Notes under the pieces: model-generated
Database searches by the model: none
Seen by the model: only the letters and a program-made list of their open reading frames with translations
What the model was told of the DNA's origin: nothing
In this document: positions 54,877 to 63,612 of the stretch, piece by piece
Position numbering within the stretch: position 1 is the stretch's first letter
Layout of the letters: each line of letters opens with the position of its first letter
Virus record (IMG/VR): IMGVR_UViG_3300030419_004471
Coordinates: 149,602 to 213,601 of that record
Length of the DNA stretch: 64,000 bases
Strand: one strand, 5' to 3'
Translations under genes and position numbers: made by a program

Positions 54877-56511
54877 TTATAAAGTATCTAAATCAGCGAT
54901 TTCAATCTTACCATAGAATTCTGGTCTTACCATCTTCTTAGCGTATCTAGTCATTACACCTCTTCTTGGTGTAAAGTTCGCTGGGTCATAAACCAACGGA
55001 GTCATTATAAGCGGTACATATGGTGCATAAACTGCTCCACTTTCAAGGAAGTTGCTACCTTTAAATCCTAATAAGATTTCGTTAGAAGTCATATAAGGGT
55101 TTTTGTAAACAGTATATCTGTTTGCAAGAGCACCTACTTGAGTTACACCAGCTGCGAATTCCATAGCGTTTGCATCAGCGTTAACTGAGAAACCTGGAAT
55201 TGATTCTAGAATAGTACAAGCATCAGGACTAGCCACGATGAAGTTTGCACCACCTCTTAGAGTCAATTGGTGAATTCTGTTTGAAACTTTGTTGATTTTA
55301 ACACCTAATGTTTGGAACCAGGTATTTCTTTGGTATGCTACAGAAGAACTTGGTGCAGTCCATCCAGTACCATCCCACTCTTTACCAATAGTTACAGACC
55401 ATTTTTCACTTGATAATGCATTAGTTTTTAACATATCTAAGATTTCTAAGTCAATCTCTAATGAGATATACTCAGATAACATAGAAGTTAATTCAGCTTC
55501 TGCATCAATTGAGTGATAAGCGTTAAGGTCTTGCGCTAATTCAGGAGTCCATACTGCTTTTAACTTTCTAGTCTTAGCAACGATTGCCTCTGATTTCAAT
55601 TCAAGATCGATTTCAGGGATATCAAGTATAGTTCCAGAAGATGCAGCTCCAGCATTCATAACTGGGTCTCTATCTTCGAAATCACCTCTGTTAGTAGAAG
55701 CAGGTACATCAGCGTAGTTAATAGTACACGCGTCGATACCAGCATCTTCTGATGCAGATACAAAGAATACATAGTTTGAACCGTCAACTTTGTTGAAGTC
55801 ACCAAGTGTTTCAACTAGCTCAGTTCCACCAGTACCAGCGTTTACAACAGTAAATGCTCTAATTGCATCGTCATCAGCATTAGATGATACGTTAGATTTA
55901 GCGATTGTAATTTTTATGACCTCATTTGCTGCAATAGATGCAGTAAAGTTTGAGTCATATCTTAAGTCAGCGTTAGATGCAGTTGCAACAGTTGTGTTAC
56001 CTGCAGATACCGCTACTGATTGGTCGTTAAGGGTATAACCATAACGTCCACTACCATATAAACCATCTTTAGCTACGTTAGTTGAACCTAAATCACTTCC
56101 GTCTCCACCGAAAATCGATGAACCAGAATATGGAGTTACGTCCGAACCACTACCAAATTGATTGTTAAAGTACTTAAAGTCTAAATAGAAGATAAGTCCT
56201 GAAGGTAAGTTCATAGGTTGAACAGAAACGAAATTCTTCGCACTGATTTCACCAAAAATTCTTCTTACCAATGGTAGAGCTACACCATTCCACTCTTCAT
56301 TACCTGAAGCGGCAGAAGTAGCGTTAGCTTCATCAAGCAATTGTTTTGCTTGGTTTTCTAAAAGAACAGCCATCTGTGATTGTTCTCTTTCTTTTAAGCC
56401 TTCAAGAAGTCCAGTTTTTTCCCATTTGTTTTTCAAACCTCTAGTTTGCTCAAGCATTACTGCTTGTGGGTTCTTTCCTTCTGTTAGCTTTGATAAATCA
56501 AAATTTGCCAT
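54877..56511 (-). CDS. major capsid protein (T4 gp23-like)
   Basis: LPLVRR, VQPMNLPSGLIFYL, KTRKLKA.WT.ELAQDL, YAPYVPL, GVMTRYA. Confidence 0.97.
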   Translation of the reverse strand: MANFDLSKLTEGKNPQAVMLEQTRGLKNKWEKTGLLEGLKEREQSQMAVLLENQAKQLLDEANATSAASGNEEWNGVALPLVRRIFGEISAKNFVSVQPMNLPSGLIFYLDFKYFNNQFGSGSDVTPYSGSSIFGGDGSDLGSTNVAKDGLYGSGRYGYTLNDQSVAVSAGNTTVATASNADLRYDSNFTASIAANEVIKITIAKSNVSSNADDDAIRAFTVVNAGTGGTELVETLGDFNKVDGSNYVFFVSASEDAGIDACTINYADVPASTNRGDFEDRDPVMNAGAASSGTILDIPEIDLELKSEAIVAKTRKLKAVWTPELAQDLNAYHSIDAEAELTSMLSEYISLEIDLEILDMLKTNALSSEKWSVTIGKEWDGTGWTAPSSSVAYQRNTWFQTLGVKINKVSNRIHQLTLRGGANFIVASPDACTILESIPGFSVNADANAMEFAAGVTQVGALANRYTVYKNPYMTSNEILLGFKGSNFLESGAVYAPYVPLIMTPLVYDPANFTPRRGVMTRYAKKMVRPEFYGKIEIADLDTL

Positions 56512-56532
56512 TTGTTTTCTCTCCTTTAAAAA

Positions 56533-57684
56533 TTATTTAATGTTAGCTAACTTCTTAAATCTGTTAGCGATTTCGTTACCTTCAGAAATAATTTCTTTCT
56601 TAGGAGCAGTAGATTTAGTTACTGTAGATGCGATACCTTCAGTAATTTTTCTAGTCTGTCTTTTTTCTCCCGTGAATTTCATTGATTCTGCTAAAGTAGC
56701 GAATACCAATTTCACCTCTCTTACAGATTTTGTTCTGTCAAGAGTTTCAACAACTTTATGTTTTTGGTCATTGTTCATAACATATGAACGGAATAACTTA
56801 TTAGCATAAAGTAATTTTGCGTTTAGAAGGTTAACTTCATTGATAGTCTTTTTAAGTTCTTTGATAGTAGAGTATGCCTCTTCAAGTTCCTTATTAGTTT
56901 CTTCAAGTTCGTTAGATTCTTCAACTGCTTCTTCTTCAGATTCTTCTTCTTCTCCGTATCCCATTTCTCTTAGGATTTCGTCTAAGTCGATGTCATCTTC
57001 TTCTTCTTCAGTTTCAGCTTCTTCCTCAGTTGCTTCTTCTTCTGATGCTTCTTCTTCAGATTCTACTTCAGCTTCAGCTTCAGTTTCTTCTTCAGTTTCT
57101 TCATCATGCAATTCTTCAACCGAATCACCTTCCTCTTCTTCTTCACCTTCTTCTTCAGAAAGTTCAGATTCTAATTCTTTGATGATATCTTCAAGGTTAA
57201 GTTCTTCATCAACCTCTTCTTCATCATCACCATCTTCTTCAGATATTTCTTCAGATTCAGTTACTTCTTCTTCTTCGTCAGCTTCTTCATTAACTTCAGC
57301 TTCCTCAGAAACTTCTTCTTTATCTTCTGTTACGTCTGCTTCTTTTTCCTCAGAAACTTCTTCAGTTTCTTCGTTAACTTCTGCTTCTTTTTCTTCAGAT
57401 ACTTCTTCAGTTTCTTCGTTAACTTCTGCTTCTTCAGTTACTTCTTCAGTAGCTTCTTCAACTTTTTCTTCAGATACTTCTTCTGTAGACTCTTCAACTG
57501 CTTCTTCTACATCTTCTGTATCTTCATCTTCTTCTTCCATTTCTGATTGAAGTTTCTTAGATAAGATAGATTGTAGTTTTGGAGTAAATGCTTCTTCTAA
57601 TGCGATTTTTGCATTAGCGATTGCAGTTTCTCTTACAGCTTTAGCGTCAGCGATGGCTTCTTTTAATAATTTAGAATTTGCCAT
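56533..57684 (-). CDS. prohead core / scaffolding protein (gp22-like), highly acidic
   Basis: Directly upstream of MCP; Glu-rich core; C-terminal EVNLLNAKLLY...FKKLANIK. Confidence 0.85.
   Translation of the reverse strand: MANSKLLKEAIADAKAVRETAIANAKIALEEAFTPKLQSILSKKLQSEMEEEDEDTEDVEEAVEESTEEVSEEKVEEATEEVTEEAEVNEETEEVSEEKEAEVNEETEEVSEEKEADVTEDKEEVSEEAEVNEEADEEEEVTESEEISEEDGDDEEEVDEELNLEDIIKELESELSEEEGEEEEEGDSVEELHDEETEEETEAEAEVESEEEASEEEATEEEAETEEEEDDIDLDEILREMGYGEEEESEEEAVEESNELEETNKELEEAYSTIKELKKTINEVNLLNAKLLYANKLFRSYVMNNDQKHKVVETLDRTKSVREVKLVFATLAESMKFTGEKRQTRKITEGIASTVTKSTAPKKEIISEGNEIANRFKKLANIK
57298..57432 (-). repeat. 45-nt tandem repeat in the scaffold gene (EAEVNEETEEVSEEK)
   Basis: Copies at 57343-57387 and 57388-57432 differ at 2 nt; a degenerate third copy lies at 57298-57342. 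Confidence 0.85.
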
Positions 57685-62098: not shown

Positions 62099-62106
62099 AT
62101 CTCTCC

Positions 62107-63612
62107 TTAAAATAATTTTTTTAATTCGTTATCTTCATAGGTATCAGCATAATACCATTTCTTATCCTTCATATTGTATAAATATACATATTCTGCTCCA
62201 CCACGGCTATCTGCACTTTTAATATATCTTGATAAAGTTTTCATATTACCTTTTATTGGCGAAGGTTTTTCATTATAGTATTCTATTGGTTTATCATCGA
62301 AGATTCCTCTTGCTCCACCTTTTTTGATTAGAGTTAAAACATCCTTTTCATTTTTCATATGTTTTTTCAAACCCTTTTTCATATTAGATGGATATCCATC
62401 AAAGTGAACATATGCTGATGCAATTTTACCACTTCTATCGATAACACCAACTTGGGAACGAGTTCCTTCTCTAAGTAAACCTTCCGGTAACATTGATTTT
62501 AGTTTTGTAGATGATTCCTTTTTAGCAGATAAAGCTTGTTTTATTCTATCTTGTAGGTCCTCAACAGCAGAATCAATTTCCATTTTTTCATTATATGTAT
62601 TTCCACCATCATCTTCTAAATCCTGCATTTCATCTTGCATAACCTCCAATGCTTTCATTTCATCAGAAATTTCTTCATACTCTTGGTCATCTATTTTTCC
62701 TTTAAGTGAAGATACAATTGATTCAAAATCTTTAGCTTTATATGCGTTATCTAAATCTTTTTTAGATTCTTCTTTCTTTTTCTCTATTTGTTTTTGGATT
62801 GCAGCTTTAAGTTTTTCACCATCGTTTGATAGTTTATCTACTACTTGTGGGCCTGATTTCTTAATTAAATTATTGATAAATTCTTGTTCTTCTTTACTTG
62901 TTATCCAAGCGAATTTTTTTTGATACCAATCATCATTATACTTATCTCCCTTTTCCCATACATCATCCGGTACTATTATTCTATTTTTATCATCTCTTGG
63001 AGCTTTTTCAGATGAATCAGATTTAGGTGTATCTCCTGCTCCACCTTTAAGTTTTTTTCCTAACTCTTTAGCGTATGCCATAGCATCTGCACTATTATCG
63101 AATGATTTATAAGTATCACCACCATCATCATCATCGTCTTTATAGAATTCAACCGAAAATTTCTTTCCACCAATCTCATCATCACCAATAAGAATATGAG
63201 CTTCTGAACCTTGTATTCCATATTCGATTGCACCAATGGAATTTATATCAACAACTGCATCTATACCTAATTCTTTATTTAGGTACAATTTAGTTTGATT
63301 AGCTGCAGCTATACTCATTTCGCCATCATCATCTTTACTTAATTTAGGAGGTTCTGATTTTCCGGCAGAAGAGTCACCTCCCTTCGCTGCCTTATCTTTT
63401 TTGAATATGTTTACTTTAGGAGTATCTGTTGGGTCTTTCTGTCCACCATCTTTATCACCTTTTCTTTTTTCGTGAGTTCCTGCTTTGATTGCAGCATCTC
63501 TTGCTGCTTTTGTTTTAAATACCGATGTCGTACCAGTCTCTTTACTTGTAGCAGTAAATACTTCTGCTTCAGTAATTGGCTGTAAATCGATAAGTCCACC
63601 TAATTTAATCAT
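62107..63612 (-). CDS. multidomain putative head-internal protein
   Basis: MIKLGGLI...ITE tag, low-complexity linkers, internal KLKSMLPE..LREG before the duplicated domain. Confidence 0.7.
   Translation of the reverse strand: MIKLGGLIDLQPITEAEVFTATSKETGTTSVFKTKAARDAAIKAGTHEKRKGDKDGGQKDPTDTPKVNIFKKDKAAKGGDSSAGKSEPPKLSKDDDGEMSIAAANQTKLYLNKELGIDAVVDINSIGAIEYGIQGSEAHILIGDDEIGGKKFSVEFYKDDDDDGGDTYKSFDNSADAMAYAKELGKKLKGGAGDTPKSDSSEKAPRDDKNRIIVPDDVWEKGDKYNDDWYQKKFAWITSKEEQEFINNLIKKSGPQVVDKLSNDGEKLKAAIQKQIEKKKEESKKDLDNAYKAKDFESIVSSLKGKIDDQEYEEISDEMKALEVMQDEMQDLEDDGGNTYNEKMEIDSAVEDLQDRIKQALSAKKESSTKLKSMLPEGLLREGTRSQVGVIDRSGKIASAYVHFDGYPSNMKKGLKKHMKNEKDVLTLIKKGGARGIFDDKPIEYYNEKPSPIKGNMKTLSRYIKSADSRGGAEYVYLYNMKDKKWYYADTYEDNELKKLF

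Follow-up and report, generated by a model that had tools for sequence, protein, structure and literature searches.

The final 64 kb of a single-contig T4-like phage genome (213,601 bp, approximately 31% G+C; IMG/VR record IMGVR_UViG_3300030419_004471, positions 149,602 to 213,601) are referred to here as the window, which comprises 64,000 nucleotides. Several genes of its head module begin with the same N-terminal decapeptide, in some cases as a close variant, for which the consensus is Met-Ile-Lys-Leu-Lys-x-Leu/Ile-Leu/Ile-x-Glu and which we call the tag. The minus strand encodes nearly all genes of the genome. At the other contig end (locus L001, for which coordinates are prefixed G000), the order on this strand is large terminase, Portal_T4 portal protein, a conserved 291-amino acid (aa) gene, four small genes, and the N-terminus of the prohead protease. 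The head module continues in the window with the C-terminus of the protease, eight genes, a highly acidic scaffold, and a capsid protein of the Gp23 family (Table 1).

The record is a nearly complete genome that was opened within the protease gene, which runs off both contig ends. The N-terminal 50 aa of the protease are encoded at G000 3–152; about 20 codons are absent at the contig junction, and the two pieces are out of frame. The C-terminal 129 aa score 67 bits against the Peptidase_S77 profile, for which the curated cut-off is 27, and this match establishes the protease family. The capsid protein has a propeptide with five cutting sites (Leu/Ile-x-Glu), the last of which, at residue 61, is the conserved maturation site. 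Across the clade, this site is kept as Leu/Ile/Val-x-Glu followed by Ala, Ser, or Thr, at the position matching the maturation cut of T4 gp23, which supports the same protease specificity as in T4. Judged by the capsid protein, the nearest cultured relatives are Microcystis phage Mel-JY01 (51% identity), Flavobacterium phage immuto (49.5%), and Rhodothermus phage RM378 (36%), and a megablast search of the region against 50,697 phage records gave no near-identical match.

Table 1. Features of the head module within the window (coordinates are those of the window; pI, isoelectric point; AF2, AlphaFold2; pLDDT, predicted local distance difference test score)
Feature	Coordinates	Strand	Remarks
501-aa tagged protein	62107..63612	-	Tag residues 1–15 (63568–63612)
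153-aa tagged protein	61637..62098	-	Tag residues 1–15 (62054–62098); mature domain 138 aa, pI 9.7
156-aa tagged protein	60400..60870	-	Tag residues 1–11 (60838–60870); 7 cutting sites
94-aa tagged protein	58522..58806	-	Tag residues 1–9 (58780–58806); single cutting site; mature pI 9.1
127-aa tagged protein	58139..58522	-	Extended tag, residues 1–18 (58469–58522); mature pI 9.1
Prohead protease (T4 gp21 family), C-terminal 129 aa	63609..63998	-	Pfam Peptidase_S77 2e-18; phrog_207 2e-36
Acidic scaffold, gp22 analogue	56533..57684	-	pI 4.05; 14 Leu/Ile-x-Glu sites, first at residue 9
Major capsid protein, Gp23 family	54877..56511	-	Pfam Gp23 1e-76; propeptide residues 1–61 (56329–56511)
244-aa protein, untagged, within the cluster	60891..61625	-	Cyt/volvatoxin-like fold (AF2 model, pLDDT 66)
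530-aa basic protein, untagged	58803..60395	-	Mosaic of short modules found in head-zone proteins of relatives
Ribosomal protein bS21 homologue, untagged	57846..58115	-	Pfam Ribosomal_S21 8e-15
Hairpin, 21 nt upstream of the scaffold start	57698–57737	-	7–8 bp stem, loop ending AAT
Second conserved block, between bS21 and hairpin	57740–57845	-	Seen in closer relatives

An earlier, sequence-only reading of the window had pointed to five minus-strand open reading frames (ORFs) between the protease and the scaffold that share a similar start. All five are present, each starting with MIKL, MAIKL, or MKLK, and all five have a short N-terminal propeptide at the initiator Met: the first Leu/Ile-x-Glu ends at residue 15, 15, 11, 9, and 18 in the 501-, 153-, 156-, 94-, and 127-aa proteins, respectively. 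The description of these proteins as unrelated needs one correction, in that the domain of the 153-aa protein (phrog_1987) recurs as the last 119 aa of the 501-aa protein. This family of no known function was the only match in Pfam and PHROGs scans of the cargo encoded in the window. The 501-aa protein has just three Leu/Ile-x-Glu sites (residues 15, 377, and 382), and since the last one directly precedes the basic C-terminal domain (62110–62466), cleavage would be expected to split the protein in two. In Mel-JY01 as well as in 34 related loci, members of the 156-aa family lie beside the protease, and the family is likely a prohead core component; for the 94- and 127-aa proteins, no homologue was found among the related IMG/VR loci. 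The starts of the scaffold and the capsid protein had been considered similar to the tag as well, but what they share with it are protease sites (Leu-x-Glu), not the tag itself.

The head module has further tagged genes at the opposite end of the contig, upstream of the protease (G000 320–568, 140–313, 561–761, and 758–1216). The first of these encodes 82 aa, and its first ten codons (30 bases) are identical to those of the 501-aa gene, whereas the other three are small genes that open with looser forms of the amphipathic tag pattern. For the 153-, 94-, 127-, and 82-aa proteins, the mature products are predicted to have masses of 7 to 15 kDa and pI values of 9.1 to 10.1, and so is the C-terminal fragment of the 501-aa protein.

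A genome-wide scan for the tag, which had been proposed as a check, was run. Based on amino-acid composition, 0.15 MIKL starts would be expected among the 281 gene-like ORFs of the 213.6-kb genome, whereas three were observed; a fourth, located at the other end of the contig, begins at an inner ATG, and all of these fall in the head module. When the genome was scored with a matrix derived from the tags of relatives only, four head-module genes ranked in the top five of 1649 candidate starts. The relatives form a comparison sample of 80 IMG/VR loci with capsid proteins that are 50 to 69% identical to that of this phage. In these loci, Met-(Ala)-Ile-Lys/Arg-Leu starts were found for 20 of the 138 ORFs between the protease and the capsid gene and for 4 of the 729 ORFs in other defined zones (Fisher p = 2e-13); one related locus contains five tagged ORFs consecutively. 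The tag, its layout, and its genomic confinement are established at this level. The proteins behind it are diverse: after removal of the first 20 residues, 37 tagged head-zone ORFs from the relatives and this phage fell into 23 families, 21 of which have one or two members.

In the tags of the relatives, Leu4 is invariant, position 7 is Leu, Ile, or Met in 27 of 27 cases, and position 10 is Glu in 19 of 27. The codons vary synonymously (Ile, ATA/ATT/ATC; Lys, AAA/AAG; Leu, TTA/CTA/CTT/TTG) with the residues staying fixed, and the DNA upstream of the tagged genes is unrelated and unconserved. Selection thus acts on the peptide and not on the DNA, and the conservation of the tag is established at the protein level. 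When all IMG/VR contigs were scanned for codons that spell the exact decapeptide, at least 120 stretches matched, compared with 4 for the same codons in permuted order. Among the matches listed (80 stretches), 84 of 90 are true ORF starts, and T4-type head genes also occur on 31 of the 80 stretches. Pooling both sets gives at least 114 distinct tagged ORFs in at least 64 families.

Searches of whole records revealed that tagged genes occur outside the head module too. The 296-kb viral contig L150 has 15 matches to the tag pattern, located in two clusters (G003:C1 207512–216069 and 268623–270379), compared with 1 match for a reversed-pattern control, and its tagged set includes a paralogue family that shares residues beyond the tag. 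Four matches were found in Mel-JY01, three of them at the annotated coding sequence starts of a paralogous family (tagged paralogues at record positions 60276–62762) and the fourth in a truncated remnant, and one match was found in immuto (coding sequence 41). Inspection of the head modules of Mel-JY01 and immuto by eye showed no tags there.

The 153-aa protein has 179 metagenome homologues, and the residues around its putative cleavage site were analyzed in 116 of the 120 listed, namely those with a conserved anchor at the start of the domain. In the residues preceding this anchor, P3 is Ile, Leu, or Val and P1 is Glu in 116 of 116 sequences, with Asn or Thr between them in 110; P1' is Gly, Ala, or Ser in all 116. 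Glu15 of the 153-aa protein is an invariant alignment column, and the site at the domain boundary is invariant, whereas the N-termini of the family are of more than one type: 57 are of the MIKL type (10 of them MKLK), 39 are of a second type, and 20 are of other types. The second tag class reads Met-Lys-Ile-Thr-Lys ... Glu-Ile-Ile-x-Glu-Glu and is also found on the 66-aa gene at G000 561–761. In the AF2 model of the 153-aa protein (pLDDT 89.6; predicted template modeling score 0.83), residues 4–14 are disordered, and the fold begins at residue 16–17. In the 501-aa protein, the same protease site precedes the internal copy of the domain. The homologous domains of Vibrio phage KVP40, Pectobacterium phage CBB, and Cronobacter phage GAP32 begin within the first seven residues and have no propeptide, and these copies sit amid small hypothetical genes, away from the head genes. 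The tag is therefore a module added onto a pre-existing domain. A Foldseek search of the 153-aa domain against the PDB gave nothing below E = 0.5, and an exhaustive VIA-align search gave a best Z score of 4.2, that is, no clear solved relative; in the Atlas, the domain matched only its own viral clusters and a cluster of pentapeptide-repeat proteins (TM 0.74).

In T4, the internal proteins IPI, IPII, and IPIII carry a capsid-targeting sequence (Mullaney and Black 1996, according to the reviews PMC9026906 and PMC3012670). Targeting of IPIII depends on its residues 4 and 7, and processing on residues 8 and 10 (PMC9026906). The T4 record shows a ten-residue peptide for IPII and IPIII, with aromatic residues at positions 4 and 7 (Tyr4 and Phe7), Ile8, and Glu10, and a version of 19 residues for IPI. 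The tag described here has the same length of ten, hydrophobic residues at positions 4, 7, and 8 (Leu4, Leu/Ile7, and Leu/Ile8), and Glu10. In both systems, an N-terminal propeptide of 10 to 19 residues, including a longer variant like that of IPI, is common to otherwise unrelated small basic proteins from fast-evolving loci, and a gp21-family protease is encoded, cleavage in the present phage being assumed by analogy. The genome that bears the tag encodes a gp21 protease, a gp22-type scaffold, and a gp23 capsid protein, as a targeting sequence of the T4 type requires. The two systems differ in that the genes are clustered between protease and scaffold here and scattered in T4, in that the tag is near letter-identical across phages whose capsid proteins are only 50 to 70% identical, and in that a genome can have as many as 15 tagged genes, with a second tag class in the same families.

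Among the T4 proteins tested, the vertex protein gp24 is nearest to the tag (matrix score −0.1; others −10 to −25). Its propeptide likewise has ten residues, with a hydrophobic residue at position 4 and Leu-Leu-x-Glu at positions 7–10, but gp24 is a structural shell protein and not variable cargo. Encapsulin cargo-loading peptides are also short, portable addresses, which send diverse cargo inside an HK97-fold shell; they are usually C-terminal, bind the shell, and are not removed, whereas the tag is N-terminal and has a protease site at its end. The ejection proteins of SPN3US and phiKZ carry long propeptides with a proposed role in prohead targeting, and a related protease cuts them at x-x-Glu (PMC5694885, PMC10052503); these propeptides, in contrast to the tag, are mostly longer than 100 residues and have no shared short label. 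A secretion signal peptide was considered and rejected, because charged residues at positions 3, 5, usually 6, and 10 leave no hydrophobic core.

Taken together, the gp21-type protease, the ten-residue layout, the selection at the protein level, the diverse cargo, the boundary site, and the untagged copies support the tag as an analogue of the T4 sequence, and we consider it likely that the decapeptide is the capsid-targeting sequence of this T4-like phage clade. The sequence-only reading had proposed a signal analogous to, but different from, that of T4; this proposal has held up, as every prediction that could be tested on the sequence fits the T4 analogy. For docking and its partner, cleavage, retention in the head, and injection, we infer the following course. 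As a short amphipathic helix, the tag would dock a newly made protein on the core of the assembling prohead, which the acidic, gp22-like scaffold forms together with its partners, while the gp23-type shell is still open. Once the shell is complete, the gp21-type protease would cut after the Glu, with Leu or Ile standing three residues before the cleavage point, and would thereby free the mature protein and also destroy the scaffold and the capsid propeptide. The mature cargo, which is mostly small and basic and has no further accessible cutting site, would remain in the head with the DNA and could enter the cell upon infection. Because tag and cargo would be separable modules, the locus between protease and scaffold would turn over quickly, as would satellite loci elsewhere.

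The N-terminus could also be nothing but a pro-sequence that the protease removes, keeping the protein inactive or offering a cut site, with entry into the head depending on other parts of each protein. The Leu/Ile-x-Glu site is indeed the best-conserved feature over all tag classes, and proteases of the gp21 type require little beyond P3 and P1 (PMC9026906). Positions 2–5 and 7, however, are as well conserved as P3 and P1, even though cleavage should not depend on them, and in the long tags these residues sit 10 to 20 residues upstream of the cut. Moreover, at least 64 unrelated mature sequences cannot each have a packaging determinant of their own, and we regard this explanation as unlikely. 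It is highly improbable that the shared start reflects a constraint on the nucleic acid, be it a recombination cassette or a translation-initiation region favored by an AT-rich genome. The 30 bases shared by the 501-aa gene and the gene at G000 568 would fit such a constraint, as would the fact that AAA and TTA are the commonest codons in this genome, but the upstream regions differ among the tagged genes, the residues stay fixed under synonymous codon changes, the same codons in permuted order occur approximately 30-fold less often, and the motif is limited to head-module genes (in this genome, and by zone enrichment in the 80 loci). A DNA cassette or a shared promoter was ruled out on the grounds of the differing upstream DNA and the synonymous codon variation.

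It is also conceivable that all tagged proteins are accessories of the prohead core or scaffold that are degraded during maturation, with no delivery to the host. There are 7 cutting sites in the 156-aa family beside the protease and 5 in a 57-aa tagged protein. The conserved gene that follows the portal gene and encodes 291 aa (G000:C1 1197–2072, minus strand; L001), which is present in 35 related loci and belongs to no Pfam family, points in the same direction: its product has 14 Leu/Ile-x-Glu sites approximately 20 residues apart, whereas 4.7 would be expected (p < 0.0005), and this product probably belongs to the core and is broken down to small peptides by the protease. This pattern does not extend to the 153-aa protein, the 94-aa protein, and both halves of the 501-aa protein, which have no sites beyond the tag and the domain boundary, and the 153-aa domain is predicted to have a compact fold and is expressed untagged by other phages. 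Enzymes are found among the tagged proteins of relatives as well. A Pfam scan of 48 representatives of these tagged families identified two NUDIX hydrolases, one lysozyme of the T4 type, a fusion of a zeta-toxin-like kinase with a nucleotidase, and DUF5661, in addition to a weak ART-PolyVal match (23 bits, where the cut-off is 31). The presence of enzymes among the tagged proteins is more in keeping with delivery than with scaffolding, and T4 Alt is a precedent for a packaged ADP-ribosyltransferase. General degradation of the tagged set therefore appears improbable to us. None of the three rival explanations accounts for the conservation of residues 2–7, the diversity of the cargo, and the synonymous codons together.

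Several observations weigh against reading the tag as a capsid-targeting sequence. There is no sequence similarity to the T4 targeting sequence (matrix scores of −12.7 for ipII and ipIII and −15.3 for ipI), and the analogy therefore rests on layout and context. Three genes within the cluster, encoding the 244-aa protein, the 530-aa protein, and bS21, lack the tag. With their many cutting sites, the 156-aa family and the 57-aa protein are perhaps consumed rather than delivered, and some tagged proteins thus look like degradable core components and not like injected payload. AT-rich, Lys-rich starts are frequent in this genome and inflate weak matches, such as that of a 41-aa ORF at G000 94635. 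In the literature, we found no virion proteomics, N-terminal, or genetic data for tag carriers. Complex prediction for the scaffold and the 127-aa protein gave 0.21, with the mark set at 0.34; this value is listed here but is evidence neither way.

The targeting principle has been known in T-even phages since 1996, and related long propeptides occur in giant phages (PMC5694885). In the literature, we found no description of a second, sequence-distinct ten-residue label or of near-invariance across a large environmental clade. The same applies to the clustering of tagged genes between protease and scaffold, to two tag classes on one cargo family, and to the contrast between tagged and untagged versions of one domain. 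To our knowledge, a capsid-targeting sequence has so far been described only for T-even phages, the long propeptides of giant phages being a looser parallel. The T4 sequence underlies protein packaging in work with T4 nanoparticles and accounts for the delivery of anti-restriction proteins by T-even phages along with the DNA.

We lean, with some reserve, toward the broader view that the decapeptide is a portable, near-invariant address label of a large, mostly uncultured clade of bS21-carrying, Bacteroidota-linked T4-like phages, and that the set of proteins they package and inject into the host can be read from metagenomes. If so, this set already contains NUDIX hydrolases, a lysozyme, a kinase, an ADP-ribosyltransferase-like protein, a widespread unsolved fold, and dozens of orphans, and would amount to a ready catalogue of early-acting effectors and candidate counter-defense proteins. 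The tag would provide a natural cargo-loading tool for phages of non-model hosts and a sequence rule that flags injected proteins of uncultured phages, in which effectors are otherwise invisible. A second short label with another sequence, kept in hundreds of environmental phages, would also imply that the principle is general within phages that have a gp21 protease. The presence of tagged and untagged copies of one domain suggests a route by which phages shift an effector from early expression to prepackaged delivery. Mel-JY01 and immuto are the cultured entry points.

Of the untagged elements of the cluster, the 244-aa gene is probably outside the tagged set. Homologues of its product number more than 270, some of them encoded on the chromosomes of Pseudoalteromonas, Enterovibrio, Tenacibaculum, and Roseivirga, and the protein belongs to no Pfam family. 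The AF2 model matches volvatoxin A2 (Z score 8.4, 148 residues aligned), Cyt1Aa (Z score 7.1), Cyt2Ba, and Evf, with the next unrelated chain at a Z score of 3.5, and we consider the protein a candidate membrane-active protein with a Cyt-like fold.

The bS21 gene is located between the cargo cluster and the scaffold gene, on the same strand, and is syntenic in many relatives and in Mel-JY01. Phage bS21 genes have previously been found together with protease and capsid genes, in that case on the opposite strand (PMC9723584). Several late genes of the present phage have an AGGAG-like sequence ahead of the start, which would be notable if the host is a species of Bacteroidota, since these normally ignore such sequences.

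The hairpin upstream of the scaffold gene is found in this phage and 28 related loci, at a distance of 19 to 34 nt from the gene (54 nt in one locus). At least 15 different stem sequences occur, with pairing kept in all of them, and RNAalifold detected compensatory changes in four of the five pairs, with one broken cell in 145. A covariance model of the hairpin had the site upstream of the scaffold gene as its sole match in the genome, and no Rfam family matched in the window, this hairpin included. The hairpin may act on the translation or the stability of the scaffold mRNA. In the neighboring conserved block, an AT-rich run that resembles a promoter is accompanied by a small, variable hairpin and by a conserved segment with another covarying hairpin inside it. 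Elsewhere in the window, two adjacent tail-fibre-like genes on the minus strand (1029 and 287 aa; 45078–49043) both end in the intramolecular chaperone domain Peptidase_S74, and they are followed by the genes for the tail sheath (39933–42311) and the tail tube (39394–39882).

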